From the NCBI RefSeq assembly GCF_036365525.1, contig NC_090395.1, positions 65,683,326 to 65,747,325 on the forward strand: a DNA stretch of 64,000 nt, in the 5' to 3' direction. Origin of the DNA: Heterodontus francisci (taxonomy: Eukaryota). Of this stretch, positions 3,118 to 64,000 are shown piece after piece. Position 1 is the stretch's first letter, and each line of letters begins with the position of its first letter. Position numbers and translations under genes: made by a program. The notes beneath the pieces are model-generated. The model did no database searches, was not told the origin of the DNA, and saw only the letters and a program-made list of their open reading frames with translations.

Positions 3118-3351
3118 CTGAAACTGAAGAGATAACATTTCAGAAATTGAACAGGAAATAACTGTTGAATACAAACAGATACAATTTACGTGGGGAGAGG
3201 CGGGTCTTTCAGAGCAGTGAGAGACCTTTTGACAGCTATGCAGCAGGTGCTGGGGCCCTATTTTAAGCACCCCAGCACCTGCTTCCTGACAGCTGTCAAA
3301 GAAATACTTACCTGATGGCTGAAGAGTGGGGGCTGCTGTCAATCTGACAGC

Positions 3352-28455: not shown

Positions 28456-29069
28456 TCTGAACACAAGGATGAGAATTTTATCATGGAAGCATCTGGGGAC
28501 TGGAAGCTAATGTGGACCAGCAAGCAAAGGGTTGAGGAGTGAAGCAGACACAGTGCGAGCAAGGATACAACAGTAGAGATTTGGCTGAGCTTACGTTGAT
28601 GGGGAGTGGAAGATGGGAGGCCACCCAGGAGGGCATTGAAATAGTCGAGTCTGGAGGTAACAATCAGCATGAATGAGGAAATTAGTGGCCAGGGAGGGGA
28701 TGAAATCCGTGGTTAGAGAACAGTGTTTGTGGTGGGGATAAAGATAATGGCTTCAGTCTTCACAATGTTTAATTGGCAGATATTGTGGCTCATTCAGTAC
28801 TGGATGTCGGATAAGCAGCTGGACATGCATAGAGGCAATGGAGGGGTCAAGAGAGATGGTGGTCAAACAGGAGATCAGGCTTCCTGCTTGTTTAAGTCAT
28901 AATTATCAAAATAAAGACCAAATCATAATATAATAAAATTAATATAACAACAGATTTGCAAAAACAAAGAAAATCAAAGTCTTATTTATACCAGCGTATC
29001 TCCTATTCTACGGTAATAAAGGTACATCACTCACATTATGTAAAAGTGTAACATACAATTGGAGCTAAA

Positions 29070-33066: not shown

Positions 33067-36000
33067 TGTTGTGATCCTGTAGTTTTTTGTTCTTTTCCAG
33101 GAAGTATGCAGTGTGCCATTAAAGCTGTAAAAGGATCAGTACTGCTTTTAGAACCAGAAAGCCTCAGGAATTAGAGAAAGTGCATTCCGGTTGCCATAGG
33201 ATACAAATATACAGAGAAGGAACCAACCAGCTTCAAAGAATGCATCCTGGTTACCCTGCAACAGCCATTCGGAGAACAAGGACCAAATATGCAATGTTAC
33301 GATGAACTGTTTGAACTGGCTTTTTATTTTTGATACAGACTGTTCTAACACACAGGCAGCTATTCTGCCAGCATATACTGAAGGAAAGAGAGTGCTCTCT
33401 TGGCTTATTTAAACCCTATTTATTATACTCTCAGAATCCTGATAAATCAAGCCAGATTATTTTCTTAAAAGAAAATAAACAATTACTTTAGCTACTCAAC
33501 TGTATTTGCTGAATTCATTGCTGGAAAAGGAAGAAGTGCATCACTTCAGCTCTTGAAATAGATTACTGACAGTCCTACTGTTGAAGAACTTTTTTTAATC
33601 CCCATCGGACAGCTGTGAGGACTTCAAGCAACCTTGGACTGTTCCACAATGGAAGATTCCATTTCAGCAGGAGCGTAAATCCACAAGGAAACCAACTTTT
33701 TCTATTTGGAATGTTGCTTCTATCTTAGTAGTGTTAGAGAATTTAGTTTTACTAATTAAACATTTAATTTGTTGATCTAAAGACACCTGATTTGGTTAGC
33801 CTGATTCAGGGGATAATAGATGGTCAATTTGGCAGTGTTTTTTTTAATATGGAAGGCTTAAAGTGATATGTTAGGCAATCTGTGGAGGGACGGGACTGAA
33901 TCAACAGTACGTTTCTCCCACTGCAATCAGAATCGTATATTTTGATTGGGGGCTTTGTCTTGAGGGGTCAATCATAACTTATTAATTGGGGGCTTGCTCG
34001 CGGTTGAATCATATTTAGTTCAGTGGCTCGTGGCTGGGATCAGAATCAGACTAATTTGGAGGGCTCACATTTGGAGTCATATTCACTACTTCTTTCTGGG
34101 ATAACATATTTAAATTGAGGTCTTGCATTTGGCCTCATATTTAATTGCACTCGCGTCTGGGATCATAGCAATTGGAAACTCGATTGTTGGGATCTCAATT
34201 TAATGCCAATTACAAAGAAAATAAAAGAACCAGGTGTCTTATATGATAAGGTACAGTCTATACTATTGTAATGGCATTAGTGGTTGCAACAGAGTTTTTG
34301 GGAAAGCAGAATGTTTCCATGAGTGACTTGATAACTTTAACTAAGAACAAATTAAAAGAATTGGCAACGAAAATGGGGTTTGGAATTGAAATTAGGTGCC
34401 AAAAAAGTAGAGATAATTGACATAATAGCTGAACATTCTGGAATTAGTAGAAGAAGATGATGAGGAGGATAATGATGATGATGGGCAATCCGAGGAACAA
34501 GAAGGCAGTAGGTCCAAGAGTGATGCAGTGGTATTGACTAGGATTCATTTAGAAATGAAAAAAACTTGAGGCAGAAAAAGAATTAGGAAAACTTGAATTG
34601 GAAAAAGAGGAAAGGAAAAAAGAAAAAGTGACAGCGATATGAAAACATGAATTGGAAAAAGAGGAAAGGGAGAAAGAGAGGGAACTTAAGTTAAAAGAGA
34701 TGGAACTAAGACAAAAGGGTAGACTTAAATCCTGGGAAAGTTTGGGTCAGGGAGAATCTGAATTTAGATCAGGATCCAGCGGAAAGTTGTTTACATTTAT
34801 ACAGGCTCTTCCTAAGTTCCAGGAAAGGAGCGTAGAGGCATTTTTCATATCTTTTGAAAAAATAGCCAAACAGATGAAATGGCCAAAAGAAAGCAGGACA
34901 CTGCTCATGAAGCTTATGCCATGCTTCCTGAAGAGGCTTCTACAGATTATGAGATGGCAAAAAAGGTTATTCTCACTGCATATGAGTTAGTCCCTGAAGC
35001 TTACCGTCAGAAGTTTAGGAACCTACAGAGATTGGCTGGGCAGACATATTTAGAATTTGAGAGGGTATTGCAAATTACTTTTGACCATTGGATACTGGCA
35101 TTAAAGATGGAAACCACATATGAGAACCTTCCAGAATTGATTCTTTTGGAAGAGTTTAAAAATTCCATTTCTTCAGTAGTGACAATTCATGTAGATAACC
35201 TGAAATTTTTGAAAGCTAGGCAAGCAGCAGAGATTGCTGATGATTTTGAGCTTGTGAATAAGCCAACCTATTTTGTCCGTCACCCCCATAAACCCGAGAA
35301 GGATAGAAAGTGGGAGAATGAAAAGAAGGCTAATAGCCAGGGACAAGAAAGAACAGCTGGGAATGCCCCAGGATCACCTCCTCAGGTCAGAAAGGAAGGT
35401 GCTGAGGGTAGAAGTGAGGTTCGCAAGCCAAAGTGTTATCATTGCAACAAAATAGGTCATCTTTGTTCAGAGTGCTGGAAATTGCGAGATAAACCCATAG
35501 GACTTGTTGGGGTATGCAAAGCTAGTGCAGAGGAAAAGACGATGACTAAAAGTATAGCAGACCAGGCTATAGCTTTAACGACAGCTGTGAAATCAGATAC
35601 TAAAACTAAAATGAATGTAGAGGTTAAGAATACAATACCTGAGCGTTATAATGAATTTTTGTCAAAGGGGAGAGTAACTCCATATTATGTAAGTGAGGCA
35701 GAGACACCTATCATTATACTCAGGGACACAGGAGCAACCCATAAACACTTGCTTGGGAAAGATATAAGGTTTCCACCAGAGAGCGCCTTGAAGGCTAAAG
35801 TTTTAGTTAATGGAATTGGTGGGGAGTATATACCTTTGTATAAAGTATGCCAAGAGAGTGACTTAACATCTGGGATAGTAACTGTAGTGTTATCCACAGT
35901 TTTACAGTAAAGGGAATTGATCTATTCCTAGGAAATGATTTGACTGGATCAAAAGTATCAGTTTCTCCTATTGTTACAGAGGAACCAAGTGAAATTAAGG

Positions 36001-41776: not shown

Positions 41777-44700
41777 CTGTGGGAAAGAAACAAACATTCG
41801 GATAATGACTCAACATCTAAAAATCATATACTCTCCAATTATCAGCACACTGTACCTCAGCCATGCTGGAATCTCACCAGTACATCTACCTCTCCATATC
41901 TCTCCATCCTCCTAGCAGCCTGAGCTACCATGTGTACCATTGTATCAGAATATAGCAGAGCTGAAGATCAGGACAGCAGCAATGATACTGAGGATGTGTC
42001 AACATGAAAATCAAGGCTATCCATTTCAATAGCTGGTAGCCAACCTCCTATGTTGTTTGATTGTTTGATTGTCGCATGTGAACTAATTGGAGAGAGTCTT
42101 AGATAAACACAGCAGAAAATGAGGCCAAAAATTTGACTGACATCTGTTACAGGTTTTGTGGCTTTAGATAGGGAGTATAATTGTGATTGACTTTGTTTAA
42201 CTGCAGCTAAACATTTCTGGGGAGTCAGGGAGGGAATGTGTGCACAGCCCAAAAACCTGGAAATACTGGGGAAGTGGTGGTACTCTTGCCAGTGATGCTC
42301 AAATCCTATGAATGAATTAAAAAAATGGGGTGCAGGCAGTACCACACAACAGAGTTTATCCTAACCTCTCTGAACAGCAGTACCTCTGAAGGCTGAGGTT
42401 GTCATGTAAGATGGTGTCAGACATCTGCAGCCTCCTATAGGAAGACCTGCTGCATGCTGGATCTGGTGGTGTAAGGTTTAAGGTTAAGCCCAGAAACTAC
42501 AGATCAGTCAGTTTAACCTCAGTGGTGGGAAAGTTTTTAGAAACGATAATCTGGGACAACATTAACAGTCACCTGGACAAATATGGATTAATTAAGGAAC
42601 TCCAGCAGATATTTGATAAAGGCAAATCATGTTTAACTAATTTTAGTGATATTTTGATGAGGTAACAGAGAAGGTTGATGTGCTCTTCATGGACGTCCAA
42701 AAGGCACTTGATATGGCTTGTCAGCAAGGTTAAAGCCCATGGAATAAAGCGGACAGTGGCAGCATGGATATGAAGTTGGCTAAATGACAGGAAACAAAGA
42801 ATAGTGGTGAACAGTTATTTTTTGCACTGGAGGAAGGTATATATACTGGAGTGCCCCAGGAATTGGTATTAGGACCATTGCTTTCATGATCCACATTAAT
42901 GTCTTGGACATGTGTGTAAAGAACACAACTTCAAAATTTTCAAGTGACACAAAACTTGGAAGTATAGTGAACTGTGAGGAGGATAAGGGGCTTAAGATCA
43001 CGATGGTCTTTGGCATGCGGGCCGCCATTTTTTGAACCAAGATTGGCGGCGGTCTCTTAAAACCCAGCGCAGAGTCTGTGGATGGAGTCTATGTGATTGT
43101 GCACCTGTACTCACCTTTCCTGACTGTTTAGGTCATTAATGTGTATCTGCACTGAACACAGGAACATAGTATGAGCCCCTGCTGCTGACCTCAAGCATGT
43201 TGAATTGATGCCAGCAGCAAGTGAAAGATGATCATGTGTATAGTTATCAATTAAAATGTTCTTACTGCGACATTTCTAATTCATGTCTTTGCTCCCCCAC
43301 AGGGCATTCAAGAGTCCACAGGAGGTGCTCTAGGAAGACAAATCCCCAGAGGAGGTCACTCCCTCTGAGGGTGAACAGTCACAGCACTCACCCAGACCGT
43401 GCATCAGCTCAGATCCTCACACTGTGGTGGGACCATGGAATAAAAGGAGAGTGGCAGCATGGATAAGAAATTGATTAAATGACAGGAAACAGAGTGGAAT
43501 AAAGGGTTCTTTTTCAGACTGGAGGAAGGTATACAGTGATGATCCTCAGCGGGTGGTACTAGAACCAATGCTTTTCTTGATCTATGTTAATGACTTGGAC
43601 ATGGGTGTAAAGAGCACAATTTCAAAATTTGCAAATGCCACAAGACTTGTGAACTGTGAGGAGGATAGTGATAAACTTCAAGTGGACCTAGAGAGGTTGG
43701 TGGAATGAGCAACACGAGGCAGATGAAATTTAATACAGAGAGGTGTGAAGTGATACATTTTGGTAGGAAGAACTAGGAGAGGCAATATAAAATAAAAGAT
43801 ACAATTCTAAAGAGATGCAGGAGCAGAGGGACCTTGGGTTCGATGTGCACAAATCATTGAAGGTGGGAGAGCAGATTGAGCAACCAGATAATATGTATAT
43901 GAGATTGTTGGCTTTATAAATAGAGGCATAGAGTACAAATGCAAGGAAGTTATAGTGAACCTTTATTAAAACACTGGTTCAGCTGCAACTGGAATATTCT
44001 GTCTAATTCTAGGCACCACACTATAGGAAGGATTAGAGAAGGGTTCAGAAAAAATGTATGAGAATAATCCCAGGGATGAAGGATTCCAGTTACATGGCTA
44101 GATTGGTGAAGTTGGGCTGTTCTCCTTAGAGAAAAGAAGGTTGAGCGGAGATTTGATAGAGGTCTTCAAAATCATGATGGATCTGGACAGAGTACATTGG
44201 AAGATACTCAACACTATCCAGGATAAAGCAACTTGTTTGACTGACACCTAATCCACCATCTTAAACAAGGTGATCCTTCATACCAATGCTATAATGGATC
44301 AGTGCACTACAACAGGTAGTTTGATGAGAACGATGTCAAGTAGGATTTTCCCTTGTGTTGGTTCTCTCACCAACTTCCTCATACCCAATCAGGCAGCTAT
44401 GTCCTTCGGAATTTAACCAGCTCAGTTAACAGTGGTACTACCACTTTAGGTGATGAACATTGAAGTTCTCTCGCTCAGAGTACTTTCAGTGTCCTTGTTA
44501 TATTCAGTGATTCTTCCAAGTGGTGTTCAACATGGATGACTTCTTATTCCTTGATAGAGGGTGGTAGGTGACAATTAGCAGAAGATTCCTTTGCCCATGT
44601 TTGGCCTGTTGCTTTAAGACTTCATGTGGTCCGCAGTGAATGTTGAGGACTCTCGGGCCAGTCTCTCCTGAGTGTATACTCCAATTCCGTTGCCTCTGGT

Positions 44701-44900
44701 GGATCAATCCTGTCATTGGTTCAGAACATTCTCAGGGATAGTGATCCAGAAGTCTGGAACATTAGCTGAAACGTATGATTCTGTGAGTGTCACAATGTCA
44801 GGCTGTTGCTTGACTGGGTCTGTGGGACAACTCTCCTAATTTTGGAAAAGTCCCCAGATGTTCATGAAGAGGGCTTTGCAGTGTCGCCTTGGTTGAGTAC

Positions 44901-47139
44901 TGTCATGCAGGCCCCCACCTGCCAGGAATGAAGCACGTTGGTTTTGTCATACGAACATTGATTTTGAACTGTTGCTGGAGCAAGGAAATGACTTCTTGTT
45001 CAGATCAGCCGTGGCTGGAAAGAACATTTGCATAGTAACAGATGATGCTTATGTAGAGAAAGGAGCAGCCCCTGACACATTCAACCCACAATGGATGCTG
45101 ATCACCGGACAGTGAGGAGGTGGGGAAGCGCATTCTAGGGGCTACTGGGACGATGCAATCCACAGGGGCCAGGACTGGTTGGACTAGCTGGTCACATGAC
45201 TAACTGGCTGTTCCAGGGTTTTTTGAAGTAGCCACAGAGAGTTTGAACTCAGAAAGATTGTTTTCTCCTGGACTGAGAAGATTTCTGCTGTCTGCTCCCA
45301 TCTTTTTCTCACGGAACTCCAAATCCACTGAAGACACATAAACCCCAACAGAGAAACGTCTCCAACAGCAAACAAGGTTTAAAAAGAATACTGGACCCCA
45401 ACGAAGAGCAAGATCTACCAACAATCAAGGACTCTACAGTGAGCTCAAAGAACCGTAACAAAAACTGTCTTCAGAGATTGCCTCAAACTTTTCCACTTTA
45501 TTTTCTTCTGCTCTTTTCTGTCTCTATCTGCATGTGTATATTGCGTATGCATGCTAGCTTGGGCGTGTCGTGTATCGTAGCTGTTAACTGAATTAGAGCT
45601 TAAGTTTAAGTTTAGTAAATTTCAACCTTTCTTCTTTAAGCCTAAGAAAACCTGTTGGTGCTGGTTTCTTTGCCTTATTATTGGAAGTTAGTGAACAAGG
45701 ATTCACTAAGGGGGGAGCTAAAAAAACCCAGTGTGTTTAAAATTAAACCCTGTTACGACAAGACCAGGTAAAGGCTGAGAGGGAAACCTAGAACCCTTTC
45801 TCCTCAGGCGGTAACAGAAATTTGGGGGCTCATCCGGGAATTTACCCACAGACAACCAAGGGAAATTGGAACTGGGAAGCCAAATTGTTCCCAATCAAAA
45901 AACAGCAAGATTTAAATAACATGTCTGCAACTGAATCTAGTAACTCCCCAAGCCAGGGTGAAGTGACTTGGGATAAGTTAAAAGCACATACGGAGGAGCT
46001 GAGAAAAATGGCTGAGGAGTGTAGGATCACGGTACGTGACAAGGCTAGGAAGTCTGAACTCCGAAGACTAGAGGCCAACCATTTATCCCTTGAATCTGAA
46101 GAAGCAGAAACAGGGCTAGAAGCAGACTCTGACTGGGTATTGTTAGCAAAGAAACAATTGGAACAGAGGAAACTTGAATTTGAGGTAAGGGTTAGAGAAA
46201 GAGAGAGGCAGGAGAGGGAGAAAGAAAGAGCCTTCCAGAAGGAACATAAGAGAGAGAAAGACAAGAGAAGGAACAGGAAAGAGAGGAGAGAGAGAGAGAA
46301 AGAACATTCTGGAAAGAATGCGAAGAAAGAGAGCTGAAGCAGCTTGAGTTAATGAGGGGGCGACAGAGTAACACCAGTGAAAGCACATCTAATATGGAGG
46401 AGCGTAATTCAGGGCTAGGTACAGAATTGTTAAACCTAGCTCAACTAACCCCAAACAAATGAGGAAGATGTAGAAGGTTTTTTTGTGTTCTTTGAGAAAC
46501 TGGCAAGGCAGTTAAAATGGCCAGCAGAGACCTGGCCTCTTTTACTACAAAGCAAGCTAACCAGAAAAGCCCATGAGGTATATTCCCTGTTGTCAGATGA
46601 GAGTTCATCAAATTATGAACTGACCAAAAATGCTATCCTCGGGGCGTATGAAGTAGTACCCGAAGCCTATCGCCAAAAGTTTAAGTCCTCAAAAAGCAAG
46701 CTAATCAAACTTATCTGGAGTTTGAAAGAAGCAAGCTGGCTTTTGTCCTGGGAGAGAAAGGAAATCAGGAGACACAGGGGGCCCTCCTCTAGCCAAAAAG
46801 GAAAGTGCTGTGAACAAGAGTGAGGCCCAGAGACCTGTGTGCTTCCATTGTAATAAAGCAGGGCATTTAAAAGCTGACTGCTGGAAACTAAAGGGAAAAC
46901 CGGTAGGGTTAATCAGGGCACACCCACTCAGTGAAGACGGAACCCTGATGGAAAGCACAGCAGAACAAGCTGTGGCTTTAACTGCAGTAAGAGTGAGACC
47001 CAGGAAGCTTATGGCTGTAAGTGCAAGAAAAGCTAATAAGATTCCTGAAGGTTATAGGGGTATTGTGTTTGAAAGAAAAGTAACCCCATACCCCAAGAGT
47101 GGGGCAAGCAAGCTCATAGTAACTCTCCGGGTCATAACA
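44901..47139 (+). mobile_element. Gypsy element with 5' LTR (44901-45816), gag remnant and large internal deletion; copy B only
   Basis: TGTCA..GTAACA LTR; CFHCNKAGHLKADC; ends in GGTCATAACA; empty site in copy A at about 2185. Confidence 0.85.
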
Positions 47140-47805
47140 ATATGCTTTAGTCATACCTTGTACTTAGGTGGAAACAGGATGGTCCATCCAGTTATATACT
47201 TCTTAGACTTTCTCACAGCCATTTGCAACTGAATGGCATGCAAGGCCGTTTCAGAGGGCAGTTAAGAGTCAACCACATGGCTGTGAATCCAGAGTCACTC
47301 ACAGGCCATACCAGGTAACAACAGCTGATTTCCCTCCCTAAAGGGCATTAAAGCAGTTGGGTTTTGATGAAAATCCGATGCTTTCATGGTCACATGGCTG
47401 ATATTAGATTTTTAATTCCAGATTTTTTTAATTAATTGAATTTAAATTCCCCAGCAGTCTGTGGAATTTGAACTCTTGTCTCTGGGTCATTAATCCAGGC
47501 CTTTGAATTACTAAGGGATATGGGGATAGTGTGGGAAAATGTCATTGAGGCACAAGATCAACCATGGTCCAGTTGCATAGTGGAGCAGGCTCTAGGGGCC
47601 AAATGGCCTATTCCTGCTCCTATTTCCTATGCTCCAATGTTGCGATGTAACATGACTACTATGGTATGTGACCTCTGCCAACTACCTGACAGACTCTGCA
47701 CTGCTGTGGAGCCTCGGGATATTGGAGCTGTCATGTTTCTCCCAGAAAAAACATTGACCAGACATTTCAGTAAAGAGTAATAAAGTAAATCACTGAGAAA
47801 TGTAC

Positions 47806-48108
47806 TGTAAGATATTTGTAGTTCTACAGCAAACACTAGATCAAGGCCAGGTAGTTCAATACCACAGTTGTACCATCCTGCATCTGCTGAACGAAGATCA
47901 TTCATAATAACAACAAATATTCCTTGTGTCTTGCTATCAGTAATTGATATTATTCCTTGATGTCCATCTTGCTCATTTGTTTTTATGAAAACTGAACTCT
48001 GGTTGCTCCAATATTTTATGTATGACTGATACCATTTGCCACAGTCACAATCTATTGTGATCGCTCTTCCCAAAACTCCTGTTACTTTCTTTTTTGCACA
48101 CAATGCAC
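47806..48108 (-). CDS. Copy B V2 exon, open frame, 303 nt
   Basis: Homologous to 2815-3117; donor A|GTACAT; extra Cys (IDCDC). Confidence 0.83.
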
Positions 48109-48909
48109 CTGAAACTGAGGAGACAACATTTCAGAATTGAACAAGAATAACTGTTGAACACAAACAGATACATTTTTATAAGTGTTACCACTGTGTACTG
48201 AGGAATCTTGCCACAATATTGATTATTACATTGAATTCCTTCTACTTTGTGATGAAGGAAAACATTAAAATTGTGCCTATCACGGCCTCAGGATGTGCCA
48301 ATGATTTATTTTTGATATAAAGCATAGTCAGCTTTGCTATTGCGTCAGTTGTGGCTCAGTGTTAATGCTCACATCTCTGGTGTTAGTAGATTGTGTGTCC
48401 ACTCCGAAGACCTGTGCTCATAATCTAAGCTGGCACTCAACGCTGCAAGACTGAGGGAGTGCTGCACTGTTGGCGGTACTATCTTTCAAATGAGATATTA
48501 ACCTGAGACATGTCTGCCCTCTTGGTTGGATGTAAAAGCTCACATGGCACTAATTCGAAGAACAAGGGATTACTCCCCAGAGTCCTGACGAACATTTATC
48601 CCTCAACCAACAACTTCCAGACAACAGATTATGTGATCGTTATAACTTTGCTGTTTGTGGGAATTTGCTGTTTGTAAATTGGCTGCTGAGCTTTCTACAA
48701 CAGTGGCAGAAATTCAGATAAATAATTGGATGAGCAGCACTTTAGAACTTCCTGAAGTTGTGAAAGGCATGAATCAAATGCAATTCCATATTGTTCCTAA
48801 TTTCTTAGAGGGACTGAAGATACATGATCAGTGTCAGTTTGGATAGAGATTAAACAAATTCATTAATTAAACGCATTTTTTTGGTTTCAATTTATCACTT
48901 AACTATCAC

Positions 48910-49230: not shown

Positions 49231-51518
49231 CTGTGGGAAAGAAACAAACATTCTGATACTGACTGAACATCTAAAAATCAAATACTCTCCAATTTTCAGC
49301 ACTTCTGTATCTAAACCAGGGCCTGTCATGTTGGAATCTGTCTAGCACATGTACCTCTCCATATTTCTCCATCTTCCTCATAGCCTGAACTACCATGTCT
49401 ACCATTGTATCAGAACATAGCAGCGCTGCAGATCAGGACAGCAGCAATGATACTGAGGATGTGGCTAACAATCAGGTGAACAATTTCTCAGGTAACCAGC
49501 CTCCAATGCTGTTTCAATATTTGACTCTTGAAAGTGAATGAGTTGGAAAGAGTCCTAGAAAAGCACAGCAGAAAATGAGGGCAAAGAATGGGAAGTTATC
49601 TGTTACAAGTTGTGTGGCTTTAGATAGAGAGTGCAATTGCAATTAGTTTAATTTAACTGCAGCTGGAAAGAAATCCTTTGGCCCTGAAATTTATGGGGTA
49701 TGGGGAGGGAGTATGTGGTCAGGAAACCCAGAAATGCTGGGGAGGTGGAGGTTGTCCCAAACGTAATGGCAGAACCTCACCAGAATTCATTTTCTCCATT
49801 TCTTGCCCAGCACTGAGCCAGATTGAGAACTGATCAGCTGCCGAGTGTGAAAACCTGCTGTGGAAGGTTGGGGGAGTGGGGGGTTGCGAGGATTTGGAAT
49901 GTGGCAGCAAGGAGGGAAAGAGGGAAGGAGAGATCGCTGTGGGTTTGACCAATTGCAGTGTGGGACAGATTGCAGCAGGTGGTTTGTTTGGGGGCTGGGG
50001 TGAAGCTCTCCTGCTCCTTCTGGCCCACAAGCAGTGCTGGAAAAACATTTACCTGCTGTTCCTGAGGAGGATATTTTTTCACCCAGAGAGATGTCGCGGT
50101 CTGGAACTCACTGCCTGAAAGAGTAGTAGAGACAGAAACAATCATCACATTTAAAAACACTTGGATATGCACTTGAAGTGCCGTAACCTACGGGCATGAA
50201 CCAAGAGCTGGAAAGGGGAATTAGACAGAATAGCTCTTTCTCAGCCACCATGGACATGATGGGCCGAATGCCCTCCTACTGGTCCTTAAATCTTTCCATG
50301 TTTCTATGTTTAAATAGAAGGATGGGTGCATGTGAAAGTTAACTGGGCATAGGGAGTGATCTGATGCTGTGGGTTTGACAAGATCAAGTGTGGGGAATGG
50401 AATCTATGTGTTTCATTACCTGTAATGACCTTTAGGTCATTAATATGTATTACTGAAAATGTTCTTACTGCAACATTTCTAATTCATGTCTTTATTCTTC
50501 CACAGGGCCTTCAAGTGCCTCACAGGAGGTGCTATAGGAAGACGAATCCCAAGAGGAGGTCACGCCGTCTGAGGGTGAACAGTCACAGCACTCATACAGA
50601 CCGTGCCACAAAACTTGGAACTCTAGTGACCTATGAGGGAAATAGTGTTAGACTTGAAGAGGACATAGACAGGCTGGTGGAATGGGCGGACATGTGGCCT
50701 ATACAACGTAATGCAGAGAAGTGGCAAGTAATTCACTTTGGTAGGAAGAATAAGCCAAGACAATAGAAACAAAAATGATGCAATTCTGAAGTGGGTGCAA
50801 GAACTGAGAGTCCTGGGGGTTTACGTGCATAAATTGTTGAAGGTGACAGGGCAGATTGAGAAAGTGCTTAAAAAGGCATATGGGACCCTTTGCTTTATAA
50901 ATAAGGGCACAGAGTACAATAGCAAGACAGTTATGATGAACCTTTATAAAATACATGTTCAGCCTCAACTGGAGTATTGTGTCCAATTCCGGACACCGTA
51001 CTTTAGGAAGGATGTGAAGGCTTTTGAGAGGGTGCAGAAAAGAATTGCAGGAATGATTCCAGGGATGAGGGAGTTCAGCTACTTGGATAGATTGGAGAAG
51101 CCGGGGTTGTTCTACTTGGAGAAGAGAGGTTGCGAGGCAATTTGATGGATGTGTTCAAAATCATGAGAAGTCTAGACAGAGTAGATAGAAAGAAACTATT
51201 CTCATTGGCGGAAGGGTCAAGATTCAAAGGTCATAGATTTAAAGTGATTGGCAAAAGAACCAAATGGCGACACGAGGAAAAATGTCTTTATGTAGTAAGT
51301 GGTTATGATCTGGAATGCACCGCCTGAAAGGGTGGTGGAGGAAGATTCAATCATGCCTTTCAAATGGGAATTGCATAGGCACTCAAAGGAAAAAGTCTGC
51401 AGGGCTACAGGAAAAGGGTGAGGAAGAGGGACTAACTAAGTTGCATTTACAGAGTGTTGACATGGGCTTAACAAACAGAATGGCCTCCTTCAGTGGCATA
51501 ACCATTCTATGTTTCTAT

Positions 51519-52186
51519 GGGCTGGATTTTATGGGCTCCCCAAGGCAGGGTCAGAGGTGGAGTGTCCCATAGAATAGCAACAGGTGGCGGGGGGTAGAAG
51601 GCCCATCGCCTCCCTATCACCAGGAAATTTTTCCAGGGTTGGGATAGGTTGACAGTGGCCTTACCGCCAAAGGCCAATTGAGGCCATTAAGTGGCCAATT
51701 AAGTGCCTCTTCCCACCAACACTGGGTTCTAATGAGCGACAGGATGGGGCGGGGGGGGCCTACGCCAAGTGGGGAGGGTGCCTTGTAAAATGAGGCCTTG
51801 TGGGGGCAGTCCCTTCTTCATGGGCCATCGATGACCCACAGAGGACCTCCGCAGGCAAAACCTATAACTCCATGGCCCACCTACCCTGGACTTAGTGCCC
51901 ACCCTCCCACCCCACCCTGGGCCTGGGTCCAAGGGCTCTGCAGTATGGGCAGTGGCCATCTTTCCTGGTGGTGCTGCTGCTACTGCTGAGTTGCCAGTCC
52001 CATGACTGTCCGGCAGCTCTTGGAGCAGGATCCCCGTCTTTGAAGGGATGGGGATTCCGGTGCGGGATGCATGGGCATTAAAAGAGCGGAGGATCGCTCT
52101 GGGAGGATATGAAAGGCCATCGTAGGGCTCCCTCTGCCTTCTCAGCCTGGCTCCAGGAGCTCTGCCTCCTCCACAAAATCCAGCCC
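51519..52186. mobile_element. Non-autonomous Harbinger-like MITE, TIR GGGCTGGATTTT, 3-bp TSD TAT; paralog 9450-12565
   Basis: TAT|GGGCTGGATTTT...AAAATCCAGCCC|TAT. Confidence 0.8.
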
Positions 52187-53722
52187 TATGATTCCAACAG
52201 TAAGGCAGATAGTTGTGTTCTCACCTGGCGACTTGCACATCATAAGTGAACAGGAGTGGATGGTGAATGCAGGGACTGCAGTGGGGAGTCTGCATTGGGG
52301 GCCATAGGACACTGAAGGCTTTGTTCAGCTGGATGCAGATGCTGCACCCAAGGGGCCGTTGATGAACAGGATGTTCCTGGGGCAGCAGCAAAGAATGTGT
52401 GGTGTACAGGCAGGCTTTCAAGTTGCACTGTGCATGCTCACAGAGAGATTGGAGGAGTCCATCTCAAGTGTGAGTGGCATTATGTCACAAGCCTTTGCAA
52501 TGATATCTTCATCCAATGAAAGAGTAGCCTCCTGCATGGAGCAACAAATGTGGCAATCACACGAATAGGATAAATCACCCCCTCGCATTGACCATTCATC
52601 CTCCCACTGATCTCCAGCAAGGTGTTCTCCAGTGGGTGAGCCATGGGAGGGGTAATGGTGAAAGGAGACATGGATGTGGGGACTTGGTTCAAAGTGTTTT
52701 AACTTCTCACCTGTTGCCCTTCATCCCACATCATTCAGTACCCCACCTGTTGCCTCATGTCTGATGGACAAGTCTGGCCCTGCATAGGTGCAGGCAGAAC
52801 AGATTTTGCCAGGGCCCTCATAGACTCCAAAACCCAGAGGACACCAGCTAAGAGCATCTCAGCAGTCAGAGCAGGGATCTTAGCGGCCCACCCCTACCTC
52901 TGCTGACACCACAGGGGTTGCATCATGTAGAAGTGCACAGAAAAGGAAGAATAACAATTTTTAGTTGCACAAGTGTATGCACATGGCTGTTTGTGAACAT
53001 TTTTATATTGTTAAGTGAGCCCCCTGCTACACTGGTGTTCCGATGTGTTATGGAAACGTATCCTATGCCTGTACACCCTGTGTTGCAGGGACAACCTCCT
53101 GTGAGCTAAGGTCCAAGATAAAACAGGATAAGCGGCACTCGCACTGATCTGATAGATAACATGGGCAAAGTGCAGAGCAGACGTCAAAACCTCCACAGTT
53201 GTGAAAATAACATCTCAGCACAAATACTGTGAACAAACCCTCTCACACAATCAGACAAGAAATCAGCTGTCAGGTTTCTGTACTTATTGGTGTTTCCTAG
53301 TCCTGTGTTCAGCCTCCTCAATTCCCAATGTCTTCTCACCTTGCTTTCACTGGCAAGTTCCAGGAAGCCTGGGAGACCCGTGCACCCACAGTTAATTTCC
53401 AAAGTTCATGTAACATTACACAAAATGATCCATTAACATCCTGAAATTGACAACAGCATCTCTGAAGGAGTTTGCTCACACACAGACTGACACGCTCCAT
53501 TGTTAGTCCAATAATATTTTAAATTCTTGGTCAGAAAGTTGGACAGGCCATGAATTGGGTGTGCGTAACACGAGTCGGATTTCCCGACCTCTGCCCGTTA
53601 CCTGTCAGACTCTGCACTGCTGCAGAGCCTTGGGATATCGGAGCTGTCATGTTTCTCCCAGATAAAACCTATTGATCAGATATTTCAGTGGAGAGTAATA
53701 AGAAAATCACTGGCAGATGTAC

Positions 53723-54037: not shown

Positions 54038-56907
54038 CTGTAATGGAGGAGACAACATTTCAGAAATTGAACAGGAAATAACTGCTTATTACAAACAGAT
54101 ACATTAGCATAAGAGTTACCACTGTGTACAGAGCAATCTCTCCACTGTATCTACTAATGTGTTGAATTCCTTCTAATTTGGGAGAAAAAACCTTAATATT
54201 GTGCTCTATCACAGCTTCAGAATGTGCCAAAACACTTCTCAGCCAATAATTTACTTTTGAAGTACAGTCACTATTGCGATTGTGTTCACTGGGGCGCAGT
54301 GTCAGCACTCTCTCCTCTGGGTTAGTAGATTGTATGTTCGAGTCCCACTCCAGAGACCCAAGCTTAAAATCTACAATGACATTCCAGTGTAGTACTGAGG
54401 GACATGCTGTCTTTTAGATGAGATGTTACACAGAGACCCTATCTGCCCCTCAGGTGCAAATGTTGGCACAGCCCTTTTTCAAAGCAGAGCAATGGAGTTT
54501 TCCTTGGTGCTATGGTCAGTATTTGTCCCTCAACCAACAATCACAAAAAAAAGCTGATTTGTTCATTATTATGTTTCTTTTTGTGGGTTCTTACTGTGCA
54601 CAAATTGGCCGCCACTTTTTCAATGTTACAACAGTTACAATACCTTAAATGAGTAATTGGCTGTAAAGCACTTTGAGATGTTTTGTGGTCTTAAATGGCG
54701 GTAAATAAATACACGACCTTCTTTCTAACAGCAACAACTTAAATTTGAGTTGCTTCTCAATTCATTCAGCAACATGGGAAATGCCAAATTAATTTCCATC
54801 CCCTCAACTTTGTTGGGTGCAACTGGTACAGCAGCAGGATTTGGAGAAGGAAGGTTAACATGTTTCATGCAGCCAAGAACGTAGAAAGGAAGAGGATTGC
54901 GGTTCAGCAAGGAAAGATTCAGGAACTTGGAGATAGGTCAATGAGTAGAACCTTGAGGGTAGTAAAGACAGGATTATTCCCAGTGCACATGGCCATCCAT
55001 ATAAGAATAGTAAGATAATATAAGTAATTGTCTGGCTGGAGAGATGCTTCAAACGAAAATGGTTCATATTCTTGTCACATTGGTGCCAGTTCTGGAAGAG
55101 GAGCAGTCTGTAGAGGACGGGAGGATTTTACTTGAACATTTATTAGACCAATGGCCTTGCTTGGAGAGGAACGCGTGTTGTGGGGAAAGAGTTTACACTA
55201 AAATGACAGGAGGAGGGATTAAAAACAAGATGAAGAGCCAGAGAGAAAAGCAGAAATGACAAAGGTTATAGGAAAGATTAAAGAGGGTCAGTGGAGAGAT
55301 AAAAGAGATCAGATAGGAGAAGGAAGTATTGAAAAGAGGAAGATAGCCAAACAGACAGAGGCACCCATCAGTCAAATGTACACAATACATAAAGTATTCT
55401 GTGTAAAATGAGTAAGCTAGAGGCACAAATATTTGTGGGGAGATTTGATGTAATAGAATGAACAGAGTTGTGGTTTAGAGTAGGCTGTACTGGGAGCTTA
55501 ACATTGCTGGTTACAAAATAGATTCATAATACCCCTTTGGTAGCAAAAATAAAAAATAGAATATTTTTCAAAAAGTGAGAGATTGGGAAATGTTTGCATT
55601 CAGAGGGACCTGGATATCCTTGTAAATCAAACACAAAACGTCAACACGCAGGTACAGCCAACAATTAGGAAGGCAAATGATATGATAACTTTTGTTACAA
55701 CAGGATTGGTGTGTAAGACTAAATAAGTCTTTCTAGAATTATACAGAGGATTGTGAGGCCTGGAGTACTGTGAACAGTTTTGGTCTTCTTACCTACAGAA
55801 GGACATACTTCCTCTAGAAGGAGTGCAATGATGGTTCACTAGACTTGTTCCTGGGATGAAGAGATTGACCTACGAGGAGCGATTGAATGGACTAGGCCGA
55901 TATTCCCTGGTGTTTAGAACAATGAGTGGTGATCAAATTGGAACATATAAAATTCTTAAGGGGCTTGACAGGGTAGATGACAGGGTAGATGCTGAGAAAA
56001 TGTTTCTCCTGGCTGGGAATCTAGAACACATTGTTTCTCAGAATAAGGGATTGGATATTTAGGACTGAAGTGAGGAGAAATTTCTTCACTCAAAGGGTTA
56101 TGAAACTTTGGAATTCTCTACCCCAGGGAGCTGTAGATGCTCAGTCGTTGAATATATTCAAAACAGAGGTTGATAGATTTTTGGGTACTAAAGGAATTAA
56201 GGGATATGGAGGATAGTTCGAGAAGGTGAAGTTCAGGTAGGAAATCAACCATGATCTTGTTGAACAGCAGAGCAGGTTCAAAGGGCCGAATAGCTGACTC
56301 CTGAACCTATTTTTACCATCTTATGTAAAAGGAGTGTTGGAAGTATTAATCACAATTTCCATTACAGCATAATATTATTAGGTTAATATGGGGTGGGAGT
56401 AAAAAGCTAAATCTATTGATTAAAGTTAGAGTGAGAAGAAAATGTTACTGATTGGAAGAGCGATATAGATCAATTGTCTGTCAGTGAGGAACAGTGTCAC
56501 TGACAGAGCCTCATAAAACAATATTGCATCAGCTGTACTTTAAATGACAGAAGCAATCACAAACTCAAGACATGTTCTGTTTGAAGGATTATTACTTCAG
56601 ATTATTTAATCTTTACAGATTAAAACAGGTTACATTTACATTTTAATTAAACTAGCCGTATAGCTTTTTTAAAAGTTAAATGAACCCTTTATTTTCCATT
56701 CACAACTAATAATGCAGTTTAGTATATGTTGGTAACTATTTCTGTGATTCAATAGTATGGTCAAAATGAGATACAAGACTTTACACAAATATTATTCATT
56801 TATTTTTACTAAGTATTTTGTGCCTTTACACGTCTCCAAGTAGAAACTCTACACTAGACTGAAACTAACACTGATTATCTGAAGATCTAGCTCTGGCTGT
56901 TACTCAC

Positions 56908-57387: not shown

Positions 57388-60129
57388 CTACTTCTCTTTC
57401 CACAGATGCTGCCAGACCTGCTGAGTGGTTCCAGCATTTCTTGTTTTTATTTCAGATTTCCAGCATCTGCAGTATTTTGCTTTTATTTTATTTCCTGTAC
57501 TATTGCTGAAAACATATTAGCCCAGAATTAGCTGGAAATATAATGGCGTGTGAATGACACATGCTTTTATTAGTGTGAAAATCAGCCAGCGACTTGTTCT
57601 GATTTAGAGATACCTCATGAATTACAACACACTACATGTTACTGGTTGATCTGTACTGCCATTGTCGTCAGCTTCGTGCAAATGGCAACTCACCCTTAAC
57701 CTCCCCATGACCCTGATGAAGGTGTTGCATTTGCCCAGTAATTACCCCTTAAACCCGCCACAGAACGTTGAGTCTAGTAATTAATAGGATAAGTAACCTT
57801 TTAACAATGTGATAATTGGTAATGACTGACAATCAACCTCAGTGGCCCAGAATGTGAACAATTAAAAGTGTTTCACTCCTTCAGGTATTGAATTATTGAC
57901 CCAAATTTTCCCTGGACAGTAATGACGAGGCAAGCAACTCTCACTGTTATTATGGAGTAAAGGAGACAGCAACTTCCAGAGCGCACACACGTGCAGCTAA
58001 ATGCGGAAGCTGTGGTCCTAATTACGCCGCTCCTCCACATGCTGCACTCTGTTGATACCTTGTAGATAGACTCGGAAGTGAAATTAATGTAAGGCCATGA
58101 TGTAGTGACACTTACTTACACATTGCACGTGCAGCTCTGGCTCAGTTGGTATCACTCTCACTCTGGAGCCTCAAGGATTTGGGTTCCAGTCAGTCTAGGA
58201 CTTGAGCACAACAATTAATACTGTCACTTGAGGGAGGGTTGCAGTGGCTGCCTTTTGGATGAGATGTTAAACTGAGACCCTGTCTGCCCTCTCAACTGGA
58301 GCTAAAAGACCCTGTGGTGTTACTGTGAAAGAGAGTGGGGGTGTTACCTCTGGCATAGAAACAGAAAGTGCTGGAAATACACAGCAGGTCCGGCAGCATC
58401 TGTGGAGAGAGAAAGAGAGTTAACGTTTCAGGTCAGTGACCTTTCATTCGAACTTCTTTGGCTCAGTATCAATTTTCATCTGATTATATTCCCGTGAAGC
58501 ACCTTGGTATGTAATGCTATGTTAAAGGTGTTATATCAATGTAAGGAATTGCTGTTGTTGTCGATCCCACTTGCGAGCCAACATTAATCAATTAAAATGC
58601 TTCTCAAACTGCTGCTGTTGTCAATAAGAGGTCCAGCCCTTTAAGTTTTGTTGAAAGTGAAGTATTTATCCATCTGTACCAGATTACCTTCAGAGGCCTA
58701 AATTTTCCTGCTGGTTTCAATGGTTGGGAATTTTTTGTTGTGCCTAGAATACTATGAGTGAATGTTCCATCCGAAATGAACACAAAAGATCTGGACTCTG
58801 AAAATTATGCGTTTTCAAACTTGTTGCAGCTTGCAGTGGTCATGGTGGTTTGAAACTGCCAAAAGAAATGTGTTGATAGTCTCAGGGTTGATGTGCAACA
58901 GAAACCGGTGAATGGACAATGACAGTAGATGCTAGTTACTGCATGAAGGGCTGTTTGTAGCTGGGAGAAGAAGAACTGCACTTTTACAGGGCCTTTTTTG
59001 AGAAGCATCATGTATACAGAGCAACCAAGGCTGCTCGGACCTGCGCACCATTCCCATTCCCATTCTGAATCAACAAAGGTCCTCACTCAGCAAATAATGC
59101 AGATTCTGTGTTAGTGCTTCATGTGGTTGGAACACTCAGGAGGTGAATTGTCACACTGCCCATCAAAGGGTGGAAATATAATCACTGTTTGCTGTATTCT
59201 GCAGAGCACTGCAATAGATTGAAACTTTGCAAATTGATTTAAATTGAGCCACAAGAGAAATCTGAGTAACAAGATGAACTATTAGCATCAACAGGTGGCC
59301 AGCCCTTGAATCCAAGGAAACGGCAGCCATTTATCAGGCATAAAATGGAGGGAAAACAAACCAACTCGAAGGCCCGTGTCCTGCACCCGAATCACTCCTG
59401 ATGTAGAATCATTGAATCTTACAACGCACTTCTGGCATTTTGAAAGAGCAGTTGTGTTTAGTTCCATATCCTCACCTTTTGTCTGTAAGCCTGCAAGTTT
59501 CCTGTCTTTTTAAAAATCTTCAACAATGCCCAGGATTTTACAGTCAGTGGTGAAGAAACATCACTCATTGTTCACTACACTGGCAGCTGTCCACAGAGTT
59601 TTCATGGGTTTTTGAGCAGCGACATCCTGTCATTGGGTATCTGATCCAATGTGTCACCCTCCGCAGAGGATCTGGGACCTGTATGAGCTGGACAAGAAGC
59701 TGGGAGTTAACCAGTCAGATTGAAGAATCCTCACTGAGACACGCAGAATCTAAACCAGGAAGTCTAAACCAGGAATTATAAGTTAGATTTGAATCATGTA
59801 TAGAAAGCATAATAACGATTGGGGAAGAAAGTTCGGGGAGAGATAAAAGATACAGAAAGTAAACCTAAAAAAAAATTATTTCAGATTAGATTTTTTAAGA
59901 AAACTTCAACACTAATTAAATTATGAAGGAATGATACCCCACATTAATAAAATTTAATTTTCAGGGCCAGAGAGGTTATCAGCAGTCATTATAACTATTC
60001 ATGCCAGTAAAAATTCACTTAACACTTGAATGCACCATCGCTAATTTTTTCTGCTGTGAGCATTGCGTAACTAGTGGGTAGGTACCATAACTTTATGTTC
60101 TTATGTTGATTTCAGTGTTGAATCTATCA

Positions 60130-61359
60130 ACATATGAACATATGAATTGGGAGCAGGAGTAGGCTACTCGACCCCTCGAGCCTTTTCCATCATTCAATAA
60201 GTTCATGGCTGAACTGATTTCTCCACATTACCACCTACCCCTGATAACCTTCCACCCCCTTGCTTATCAAGAATCTATCTATCTCTGCCTTAAACTTATT
60301 CAAAGACTCTGCTTCCACTGCCTTTTGAGGAAGAAAGTTCCAAATACTCACGACCCTCTGAGAGAAAAAATTTCTCCTCATCTCTGTCTTAAATGGGCAA
60401 CCCCTTATTTTTAAACAGTGACCCCTGGTTCTAGATTCTCCCACATGGGGAAACATCCTTTCCACATCCACCCTGTCAAGACCCCTCAGGATCTTATATG
60501 TTTCAATCAAGCCGTCTCTTACTCTTCCAAATTCCAGTGGATACAAACCTAGCCTCTCCAATCTTTCCTCGTAAGATAGCCCGCCCCTTCTAGGTATTAG
60601 TCTAGTAAACCTTCTTTGAACTGCTTCCAAAGCTGTTACATCCTTCCTTAAATAAGGAGACCAATGCTATACACAGTACTCATGATGTGGTCTCACCAAT
60701 GTCCTGTATAGCTGAAGCATAACCTCCCTACTTTTGTATTCAATTCCCCCCGCTTTCCTAATTATGTGCTTTACCTACATACTAACCTTTTGCAATTCAT
60801 GCACTAGGACACCCAGATCCCTCTGCATCTTAGAGCTCTGCAATCCCTCACCATTTAGATAATATCCTTCTTTGTTATTCTTCCTGCCAAAATGGACAAC
60901 TTCGCATTTTCCCACATTATACTCCATCTGCCAGATTTTAGCCTTCTCACTTAACCTATCTATATCCCTTTCTAGTCTCCTTATGTCCTCTTCACAACTT
61001 ACTTTCCAACCTATTTTTGTGTCATCAGCAAATTTAGCAAGCATACCGTCAGTCCCTTCATCTAAGTCATTTATATAAATTGTAAAAAGTTGAGGCCCCA
61101 GGACAGATCCCTGTGGCACACCACTCGTTACATCTTGCCAACCAGAAAATGACCCATTTAGGTCTAGTCTCTGTTTCCTGTTAGCTAGCCAATCGTCTAT
61201 CCATGCCAATATGTTACCCCCTACACCATGAGTTTAGTTTTGCGATAACCTTTGTTGTGGCACCTTATCAAATGCCTTCTGGAAATCTAAGTACAGTACA
61301 TCCACCGGTTCCCCTTCATCCACTGCACATGTGACTCCCTCAAAGAACTCCAATAAATT
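60130..61359 (-). mobile_element. CR1 LINE RT and 3' end, cut off at its 5' side by the tRNA-headed LINE
   Basis: GVPQGSVLGPQLFTIYINDLD, KFADDTK, RRNFFSQRVVSIWN. Confidence 0.88.
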
Positions 61360-64000
61360 GGGGTGGCGTAGCATAGTGGTGTTGTCACTGGACTAGTAAT
61401 CCAGAGACCCAGGGTATTGCTCTGGGAACATGGGTTCAAATCCCACCACAGCAGAAGGTGGAATTTGAATTCAATTAATAAATCTGGAATTGAAAGCTAG
61501 TCTACTGATGGCTATGAAAATTGTTGTAAAAACCCATCTGGTTCACTAATGTCCTTTAGGGAAGGAAATCTGCTGTCCTACCTGGTCTGGCCTACATGTG
61601 ACTCCAGACCCACAGCAATGTGGCTGACTCTTAAATGCCCTCTGAAATGGCTTAGCAAGCCACTCACTTGTATTAAACCACTACAAAGTCTAAGAAAAAG
61701 AATGAAACCAGACAGACCACCCGACATCGGCCTAGGCACCGGAAATGACAATGGCAAACCCAGCTCTGTCGACCCTGAAAAGTCCTTCTTACTAACATCT
61801 GGGGGCTTGTGCCAAAGTTGGGAGAGCTGTCCCACAGACTACATACCTTATGGACAATGTCCCAGACACTGCCTTCACCATCCCTGCGTACGTCCTGTCC
61901 CACCAGCAGGACAGACCCAGCAGAGGTGGCGGGACAGTGGTACACAGTCTGGAGGGATTCCCCCTGGCAGTCCTCAACATTGACTCCGGACCCCATGAAG
62001 TCTCATGGCATCAGGTCAAACATGGGCAAGGAAACCTCCTGCTGATTACCACCTACTGCCCTCCCTCAGCTGATGAATCAGTACTCCTCCATGTTGATCA
62101 CCACTTGGAGGAAGCACTGAGGATGGCAATGGTGCAGAATGTACTCTGGGTGGGGGACTTCAATATCCATAACCAAACATGACTCAGTAGCACCACTACT
62201 GACCGAGCTGGCCGAGTCTTAAAGGGCATAACTGTGAGACTGGGTATGTGGCAGGTGGTGAGGGGAACCAACAAGAGGGAAAAACATACTTGACCTCGTC
62301 CTCACCAATCTGCCTGCCGCAGATGCATCTGTCCATGACAGTATTGGTAAGAGTGACCACTGCACAATCCTTTTGGAGACGAATTCCCGCCTTCACGTTG
62401 AGGATACCCTCCATCGTATTGTGTGGCACTACCACCGTGCTAAATGGGATAGATTTTGAACAGATTTAACAATGCAAGTCTGGGCATCCATGAGGCGCTG
62501 TGGACCATCAGCTGCAGCAGAATTGTACTCAAACACAATCTGTAACCTCATGGCCCAGCATGTCCCCCACTCTACCATTGCCATCAAGACAGGAGACCAA
62601 CCCTGGTTCAATGAAGAGTGCAGGAGGGCATGCTAGGAGCAGCACCAGGCATACCTCAAAGTGAGGTGTCAACCTGGTGAAGCTACAACCCAGGACTACT
62701 TGTGTGAAAAAACTGCAGTATGCAATAGACAGAGCTAAGCAATCCCATAACCAATGGATCAGATCCTAAGCTCTGCAGTCCTGCCACGTCCAGCCGTGAA
62801 TGATAGTGGGCAATTAAACAACTAACTGGAGGAGGTGGCTCCACAAATATTCCCATCCTCAATGAAGGCGGACCTCACCACATCATTGCAAAAGACAAGG
62901 CTGAAGCATTTACAACAATCTTCAGCCAGAAGTGCCGAATTGATGATCCATCTCGGCCTCCTCCTGAAGTCCCCAGTATCACAGATGCCAGAATTCAGCC
63001 AATTCGATTCACTCCGCGTGATATCAAGAAACAACTGAAGGCATTGGATACTGCAAAGGCTATAGGCCCTGACAATATTCCGGCAATAGCGCTGAAGACC
63101 TGTGCTCCAGAACTTGCCGCGCCCCTAGCATCTTCCCAGCAATGAGGAAAATTGCCCAGGTATGTCTTGTACACAAAAAGCAAGACAAGTCCAACCTAGC
63201 CAAATAGCACCCCATCAGTCTACTCTCAATCATCAGTAAAGTTCTGGAAAGTATCATCAACAGTGTGATCAAGCGGCACTTGCTTAGCAATAACTTGCTT
63301 AGTCACGCTCAGTTTGGGTTCCGTCAGGGCCACTCAGCTCCTGATCTCATTACAGCCTTGGTTCAAACATGGACAAAACAGCTGAACTCAAGAGGGGAGG
63401 TGAGAGTGACTGCTCTTGACATCAAGGCACCATATGATCGAGTATGGCATCAAGGAGCCTTAGCAAAACCGAAGTCAATGGGAACCGGGGGGAAAAACTC
63501 TCCACTGGTTGGAATCATACCTAGCGCAAAGGAAGATGGTTGTGGTCGTTGGAGGTCAATCATCTCAGCTCCAGGACATCACTGCAGGAGTTCCTCAGGG
63601 TAGTGTCCTAGGCCCAACCATCTTCAGCTGCTTCATCAATGACGTTCCTTCAATCATAAGGTCAGAAGTGGGGATGTTCGCTGATGATTGCACAATGTTC
63701 ACTATTCTCGACGCCTCAGATACTGAAGCAGTCCGTGTAGAAATGCAGCAAGACCTGGACAATATCCAGGCTTGGGCTGATAAGTGGCAAGTAATATTCG
63801 CGCCACACAACTCAAGAGGTAAGGTGAGAGTGACTGCCCGGCAATGACCATCTCCAACAAGAGAGAATCTAACCATCTCCCCTTTACATTCAACGGCATT
63901 ACCATTGCTGAATCCCCCACTATCAATATCCTAGGGGTTACCATTGACCAGAAACTGAACTGGAGTAGCCATATAAATACCGTGGCTACAAGAGCAAGTT
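61360..64000 (+). mobile_element. tRNA-headed single-ORF LINE (APE-EN + RT, CR1/L2-group), 5' end intact, runs off the right edge
   Basis: A box 61369-61379, B box 61433-61443, then EN (RGGGTVV, VGDFN, LDLVLT, SDH) and RT (QFGFR, ALDIK, GVPQGSVLGP, FADD) with frameshifts. Confidence 0.9.
61361..61450 (+). promoter_or_regulatory. tRNA-Thr(AGT)-like Pol III type-2 promoter head of the LINE
   Basis: TAGCATAGTGG fits TRGCNNARYGG; CTGGA-CTAGTAA-TCCAG anticodon-like arm; long extra hairpin CCCAG..CTGGG; GGTTCAAATCC. Confidence 0.75.

Follow-up and report, generated by a model that had tools for sequence, protein, structure and literature searches.

A tRNA-derived, SINE-type 5' end on an L2-like LINE of the shark Heterodontus francisci

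Long interspersed nuclear elements (LINEs) are usually seen as coding elements transcribed by RNA polymerase II (Pol II), and short interspersed nuclear elements (SINEs) as non-coding elements that RNA polymerase III (Pol III) transcribes, with only the 3' tail in common. A stretch of 64,000 nt from the shark Heterodontus francisci (assembly GCF_036365525.1, contig NC_090395.1, positions 65,683,326 to 65,747,325 of the forward strand; the whole stretch is called the window here, and its first letter is position 1) raises the question whether this division always holds. Its last part, 61360-64000, contains a decayed LINE copy with its 5' 2.6 kb, and this copy starts with a tRNA-like head containing an A box and a B box. 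Is the head a part of the LINE, and which polymerase would then read the element? With regard to the first question, the architecture of a LINE of the L2-like type with a single open reading frame (ORF), in which a SINE-type tRNA head and body form the heritable 5' end, is solid. A coding LINE that has inherited a SINE-type Pol III promoter as its 5' end blurs the division between LINEs and SINEs. With regard to the second question we report a new observation, the avoidance of T runs on the sense strand of the element, which is found also at synonymous sites.

The tRNA-derived head and its place in the LINE

The head forms the 5' terminus of the copy (61360-61447, plus strand), so that the tRNA-like part corresponds to its initial 88 nt. 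The A box TAGCATAGTGG (61369-61379) begins at element position 10 and matches exactly TRGCNNAGTGG, the A-box consensus of type-2 Pol III promoters. The B box GGTTCAAATCC (61433-61443), also an exact match to its consensus, follows 53 nt past the A box, which is a tRNA-like spacing. Both boxes match perfectly despite the decay of the copy. Between them direct reading gives an anticodon-like arm, CTGGA/CTAGTAA/TCCAG with the loop CTAGTAA (61388-61404), and an extra hairpin of 7 bp (about 61408-61428). All four features had been proposed, with the two boxes at these positions, in a first-pass annotation made from the letters of the window without database searches.

The head looks like a degenerate tRNA and very probably derives from one, although the scores stay below the usual thresholds. 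On 61368-61447 the Rfam tRNA model scores 21.8 bits (gathering score 29; E 0.042 in a search of 451 nt), and ARAGORN, relaxed to 80% of its threshold, reports at 61364-61454 a tRNA-Thr(agt) of 91 nt whose extra arm is long, as it does in a second copy of the LINE at 9920. No tRNA was called at the head by ARAGORN with default settings or by Rfam at gathering thresholds, and the fold z-score of the head is -1.0. The same annotation had traced the head to tRNA-Thr in particular. A tRNA origin is very likely, but the assignment to Thr is nominal, since tRNA-Thr does not have a long variable arm.

Head and ORF are separated by a linker (61448-61519, plus strand), which according to contig joints is missing in some family members, and by a conserved non-coding core (61520-61699, plus strand). 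This core makes up the remaining 5' untranslated region (UTR), resembles the body of a SINE, is a candidate Deu-type domain and shows 89% identity to the copy at 9920 and 67% to an old copy near 2530. Joints leading from 61448 or 61454 directly to 61520 are present in contigs of all four sequencing runs. This skipping of 65-71 nt between head and core points to a linker-less subfamily. In addition, each DNA run has over 1000 contigs that depart from the sequence immediately ahead of 61520, at a small deletion private to copy 61360.

Strong evidence that the head is part of the LINE comes from the copy at 9920 (9920-12364, plus strand, detected by BLAST). The head, present from position 28 on, is followed by the 5' UTR, by the ORF, which lacks about 765 bp internally, and by the 3' tail. 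The B box reads GGTTCGAATCC; the A box was lost by the 5' truncation at head position 28. This copy lies in a region (9000-13300) which is segmentally duplicated, with 87-92% identity, at 51068-52921. The flank 9000-9907 corresponds to 51068-52007 and the flank 12503-13300 to 52124-52921, and the paralog runs unbroken across the insertion point and holds neither a SINE nor a LINE. According to the alignment the unoccupied site is located at 52007-52025 (plus strand, near 52016), and its sequence CCGGCAG/CTCTTGG is broken by the insertion at the slash. The LINE therefore entered one of the two paralogs after the duplication, and the other one represents a natural empty site.

The inserted block begins inside the head, at position 28, and ends in the L2-type tail. 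A continuation of the head of this copy into 9860-9919 was considered and rejected; this stretch is flank and is also present in the empty paralog. An empty site combined with a 5' truncation inside the head implies that the head belonged to the RNA which was reverse-transcribed. Head, core, ORF and tail were thus reverse-transcribed and inserted as one unit. The first-pass annotation had proposed to look at the target sites, and in copy 9920 head, ORF and tail were inserted jointly with a target-site duplication of 0-1 nt.

This bears on the simplest alternative, namely that a SINE came to lie beside a LINE by chance, or that the LINE inserted into existing SINE copies by targeting. Shark genomes are dense in both kinds of elements and the flanks at this locus consist of other repeats, which would favour such encounters. 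However, the empty paralogous site refutes adjacency for copy 9920-12364, the junction is identical in independent copies, and within the window the head never occurs without the LINE body. We regard this explanation as hardly credible.

The 5' boundary of the element can be defined in two copies. At 61360 it is exact, as a foreign antisense ORF for a reverse transcriptase (RT; motif NLLEFFE) is broken at 61359/61360. The copy starts 9 nt before its A box, and the range in which SINE transcripts start includes this distance. The old copy is located on the minus strand. The 3' half of its head, the 5' UTR and part of the endonuclease region are found at 1561-2527 (67% identity to 61394-62349; also detected by tblastn with the related proteins P0001 and P0004), and the head's 5' half with the A box GTAGCATTGTGG... 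at 2655-2675 (17 of 21 positions match 61368-61388). Both halves are split by a nested fragment of a foreign LINE of 129 bp (2528-2656), which matches 19623-19752 and 56198-56312. Homology of the flank to unrelated paralogs stops at 2697, so at most 14 nt precede the head. The two 5'-complete copies, which are independent and about 30% diverged, therefore both begin at the head with 0 to 14 nt in front of it. Copies extending upstream of the head had been named beforehand as evidence against its being the 5' end; no 5'-complete copy (n=2) reaches more than about 14 nt upstream.

The junction between head and LINE body recurs in copy 9920 (9920-11142, plus strand, 82.7% identity to copy 61360) and in the old copy (2529-1561, minus strand, 67%), as the first-pass annotation had seen. 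The number of independent insertions has to be corrected from four to three, however. The region 1-3187, which carries the old copy, is a segmental duplicate of 42715-44885 plus 47141-48176 with 85-89% identity, and the copies at 2530 and at 44886/47479 consequently represent one insertion. The duplicate holds the endonuclease part at 44270-44886 (minus strand; 2-2172 versus 42715-44885, 89%) and the head and core with the same nested insert at 47226-47673 (minus strand; 2185-3187 versus 47141-48176, 85%). The 5' head half of this duplicate, at 47647-47673, is arranged as in the old copy. In this second copy of the duplication the two parts are split by about 2.2 kb of extra sequence (44886-47140).

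Relative to copy 61360, the young copy at 9920 is 89% identical in the head, 89% in the linker, 89% in the core, 83% in the region directly before the ORF and 86% in the endonuclease. The corresponding values for the old copy are 74, 60, 67, 68 and 73%. The segments are about equally diverged within each copy, which means that the parts have a common history and argues against repeated template-switch chimeras as well as against chance adjacency. Over at least two subfamilies, head and core have co-evolved with the ORF. Core and ORF are also joined in contigs that stem from other genomic copies.

If each copy were instead a separate chimera, in which the RT of the LINE jumped from the 5' end of the LINE RNA to a SINE RNA as in U6-L1 retrocopies, there would be no heritable architecture at all. 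Template switching by LINE RTs is established and would put a small RNA in its full length at the 5' end. Yet all three insertions have the junction at an identical nucleotide, no SINE 3' tail is present between core and ORF (the LINE 3' end used as query has no match in 61360-61800), head and core diverged in step with the ORF when old and young copies are compared, and one copy is truncated inside the head. Separate chimeras are therefore very improbable in our view.

The coding part and the classification of the element

The element is an autonomous non-LTR (long terminal repeat) retrotransposon of the CR1/L2 group which encodes an APE endonuclease and an RT in a single ORF. Its length is about 3.24 kb, of which the ORF of about 940 aa takes about 2.8 kb. 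In copy 61360 the decayed ORF, with the endonuclease followed by the RT, was delimited by tblastn and Pfam (61700-64000, plus strand) and runs past the end of the window. Pfam finds RVT_1 at 63265-63603 and 63509-63847 and a weak Exo_endo_phos_2 at 61850-62182 (E 0.0025). In tblastn, residues 58-797 of P0001 and P0004 align onto 61841-63996. Residues 9-316 of full-length relatives align onto 10264-11136 in copy 9920 (E 3e-39) and also onto 61841-62711.

The endonuclease motif starts at about 61789, 346 nt beyond the B box. Full-length single-ORF relatives (962-983 aa) align by tblastn from their residues 9-25 onward. This places the start of the ORF near 61700, about 345 nt from the 5' end of the element, and leaves no room for an ORF1. 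The claim of the first-pass annotation that the endonuclease follows soon after the head without an ORF1 is thereby supported.

The start codon itself is less clear. In both young copies the ATG nearest past the core (61700 in copy 61360) is in +1 relative to the endonuclease frame, which has no ATG, and the frame of this first ATG comprises 50-57 codons (61700-61800 and 10240-10330). The old copy does have an ATG in frame (about 2250, minus strand). The missing in-frame ATG may point to unconventional initiation, or merely to decay.

The C-terminal part of the protein is preserved in a sister copy, which is 5'-truncated and lies on the minus strand (26106-28456, 87.5% identity to 62246-63996). 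It contains an intact ORF of 499 aa for the RT and C-terminal region (26169-27668, minus strand; RVT_1 3.1e-34) and the 3' tail, which ends ...CAATAAATG...TGAATGAAT(A)n at 26106. This tail is of the L2/MIR type with TGAA-like repeats at the end. The element probably belongs to the L2 clade, for which such a tail and a short or missing target-site duplication are typical.

Searching 1.8 billion representative proteins revealed 162,749 homologues at E<=1e-3, the best of which is about 44% identical over 490 aa. The single-ORF relatives at this level of identity have 941-983 aa and are encoded on contigs of 3.6-4.1 kb. A protein fragment from the whale shark is 77% identical to the LINE protein, and near-identical words of the element occur in sequencing runs of at least five organisms. 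The family is very abundant and common to several related species, which makes experiments feasible.

Transcription by Pol III or Pol II

We favour the reading that the LINE is transcribed from its own internal Pol III promoter, formed by the A and B boxes, and give it about an even chance. It is favoured because of the position of the 5' terminus, the preservation of the boxes, the avoidance of T runs and the compact form without an ORF1. The first-pass annotation had inferred an autonomous LINE that captured such a promoter, a view which is supported in part; instead of a capture, head and body may have another history.

The T runs need to be described in some detail. On the sense strand of the best-kept copy the observed number of TTT is 0.22-0.24 of that expected from base composition; in more decayed copies this ratio climbs to 0.35, 0.43 and 0.50. 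Three LINE segments of other families in the window with a similar T content served as controls: 14388-15914 (plus strand), 17650-18777 (minus) and 60128-61359 (minus). Two of them are intact RT ORFs of 375-508 aa with RVT_1 and DUF6451, and one is a decayed RT-bearing fragment. They show no depletion, with ratios of 1.08, 1.18 and 1.31. Runs of A, C and G in the element are near expectation, and the depletion of TTT is restricted to the sense strand.

If codons for the protein of 499 aa are drawn according to their usage in the other LINEs, 12.8 +/- 3.4 TTT are expected and 3 are observed (P = 0.0006). For runs of four or more T (T4+) the same test gives 2.2 expected and none observed (P = 0.076). 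Phenylalanine is encoded by TTC 11 times and by TTT twice, compared with 154:100 for the other pairs of codons ending in C or T. Each T4+ run occurs in a single decayed copy only, and none is present over the 2351 nt of the best-kept copy. No T4+ run being shared between copies, the source elements must have lacked them over their 3.2 kb or so. Depletion of TTT, including synonymous sites, is a prediction of read-through by Pol III and not of transcription by Pol II.

Two further tests on T4 gave unremarkable results. In shuffles preserving dinucleotides, 0-2 runs are observed and 1.5-2.4 expected per copy, and shuffling synonymous codons within the ORF gives P = 0.21. Both null models keep the T-poor dinucleotide or codon usage of the element itself and are therefore unable to detect avoidance. 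Nevertheless these results weigh against transcription by Pol III, and so do several other points. The signal depends on the depletion of TTT and on only three control LINEs from one window, and the depletion may have another cause, T3 being no canonical Pol III terminator. A precise start at the first base is also seen in LINEs with internal Pol II promoters. Translation of uncapped Pol III RNA is poor, and the out-of-frame first ATG of the young copies leaves the translation of the ORF unexplained. We know of no natural Pol III transcript of several kb which encodes a protein, and a literature search found no paper on one.

The serious competitor, to which we assign somewhat less than an even chance, is a LINE transcribed by Pol II whose 5' UTR is a SINE captured once, either by a template switch of the RT onto SINE RNA or by recombination via the shared 3' tail. 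The head would then have been kept as, or near, an internal Pol II promoter, as a TFIIIC-bound opener of chromatin, or as a passenger. The one-unit architecture, the junction and the absence of an ORF1 fit this explanation equally well. In general, Pol II transcribes every autonomous LINE known so far, except R2 with its Pol I read-through, and SINEs can have Pol II promoter activity, as known from mouse B2. The T4 counts taken alone also lie within dinucleotide expectation. However, transcription by Pol II predicts neither a strand-specific depletion of TTT at synonymous sites, which is absent from three other LINEs, nor source elements free of T4. Moreover, the Pol II start would have to stay fixed on the initial base of the SINE head across two subfamilies with a divergence of about 30%.

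If Pol III transcribes the LINE, the A and B boxes would be the promoter of the element, and TFIIIC and TFIIIB would place Pol III about 9 nt upstream of the A box, a start that would coincide with the beginning of the 5'-complete copies. The polymerase would run through the entire element, the sense strand being kept clear of T-run terminators, and would stop, like on a SINE, at a T run in the flank. This RNA would serve as template for target-primed reverse transcription initiated at the L2-type 3' tail. The ORF might be translated from the uncapped RNA by an unconventional route or, equally speculatively, from transcripts made now and then by Pol II read-through. A free SINE that combines this head, this core and this tail would represent the element minus the ORF.

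No free SINE copy of this kind was found within the window, where the head is always attached to the LINE body. When contig depths are summed, the core reaches 3-16 times the value of the 100 nt that follow it at the start of the ORF. As contig depth is an unreliable measure, this is a hint that a free SINE may share the core. The depth ratios between contigs of presumed RNA runs and of DNA runs show no interpretable pattern.

Should Pol III indeed read this LINE, its transcript would be the first natural protein-encoding Pol III RNA of several kb, and the questions of its export and of its translation without a cap would arise.

Comparison with known elements and further features of the window

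UnaL2 from eel and ZfL2-2 from zebrafish are single-ORF LINEs of the L2 clade. Like the shark LINE they are compact (about 3.2-3.6 kb), have one ORF for endonuclease and RT but lack an ORF1, end in a 3' tail with short repeats and duplicate the target site little or not at all. Their partner SINEs share only the 3' tail with them, and neither has a tRNA-like 5' end. In the shark LINE, unlike in UnaL2 and ZfL2-2, the 5' end is shared with a SINE-type promoter.

R2 is a precedent for an autonomous LINE without a Pol II promoter of its own. It is co-transcribed with 28S rRNA by Pol I, released by a self-cleaving ribozyme and thus dependent on host gene and target. The putative promoter of the shark LINE, unlike this, is internal and travels with the element, and a permissive Rfam search of 61300-61750 found no ribozyme (Hammerhead_3 with 13.6 bits and E 7 is noise). 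U6-L1 and other template-switch retrocopies resemble the shark LINE in that the sequence of a small Pol III RNA is fused 5' of a LINE. U6-L1 chimeras are one-off dead ends with variable junctions, however, whereas the architecture described here is heritable and evolves with the ORF. Compared with a tRNA-derived SINE (less than about 700 nt and non-coding) the element is too long and coding; a sense strand free of T4 is shared by both.

Closer in organization are certain SINEs. In sharks, SacSINE1 (463 bp, partner L2-2_CM) is built of a tRNA head, a Deu-domain and a tail of the L2 type (PMC2746220, PMC5499810). A body of about 330 bp is common to the DeuSINEs of vertebrates (PMC4824008). SacSINE1 and LmeSINE1 resemble the shark LINE in that their tRNA head contains an A box and a B box, that a conserved body of a few hundred non-coding nt comes next and that the tail is L2-type; SacSINE1 also has a shark as host. 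The 5' 330-345 nt or so of the LINE plus its tail of about 120-130 nt would make a SINE of SacSINE1-like length. Unlike SacSINE1 and LmeSINE1, the LINE has the ORF of about 2.8 kb for endonuclease and RT between body and tail. An identity of its 5' region with SacSINE1 or the Deu-domain is a lead, the agreement being one of lengths and architecture alone. Searching the text of the literature for motifs of the core gave no match.

The relation between SINE bodies and LINEs was surveyed by Kojima in 2018 (PMC5786205). In this survey a SINE can have the 5' region of its LINE as middle body, as in Bov-tA, WALLSI and CoeSINE4, and a SINE can correspond to a LINE minus the ORF with a small-RNA head ahead of it. 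The LINE 5' regions found in SINE bodies came from RTE and Vingi only, and no source was found for the classic conserved SINE domains (PMC5786205). Heads were proposed to be added to ORF-less bipartite LINEs, and SINEs were stated to be unable to encode protein (PMC5786205). The survey has the head on the SINE only; in the shark, by contrast, the L2-like coding element itself carries the head. No account of a tRNA-headed or Pol III-transcribed LINE turned up in full-text searches (Repbase Reports, Dfam and subscription journals lie outside their coverage), and metagenome scans for the head-to-ORF pattern and for a motif of the core gave no match.

The origin and function of conserved SINE bodies is an old open question on which the shark LINE touches, as an L2-like LINE with a SINE-type body as its 5' UTR is a concrete and testable candidate source. 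A more far-reaching scenario, doubtful but worth stating, would see the element as an autonomous Pol III retrotransposon, that is, as a SINE still carrying its own RT, with the 5' UTR as a Deu-type body. The DeuSINEs (SacSINE1 and by extension LmeSINE1, LF-SINE and AmnSINE1) would then be ORF-deleted descendants of tRNA-headed L2 elements, and the body would function as an RNA element, either in cap-independent translation or in recruitment of the LINE protein.

Smaller pieces of the LINE are also present in the window. At 1482-1536 (plus strand) 55 nt of the 3' coding region abut, in opposite orientation, the end of the old copy at 1561. Twin-priming inversion was considered as origin of this fragment and rejected, the order of the parts being unsuitable. 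A piece of 40 nt at 42285-42327 consists only of the 3' tail and is presumably an insertion with extreme 5' truncation.

Two ORFs for immunoglobulin (Ig) V-set domains (Pfam E about 2e-12) are located at 2690-3112 and 15878-16510, both on the minus strand, and the old LINE copy directly adjoins one of these exons. Finally, 34879-35910 (plus strand) is an ORF of 343 aa with a SCAN domain (Pfam 2.6e-07), the sense strand of which is rich in T runs.

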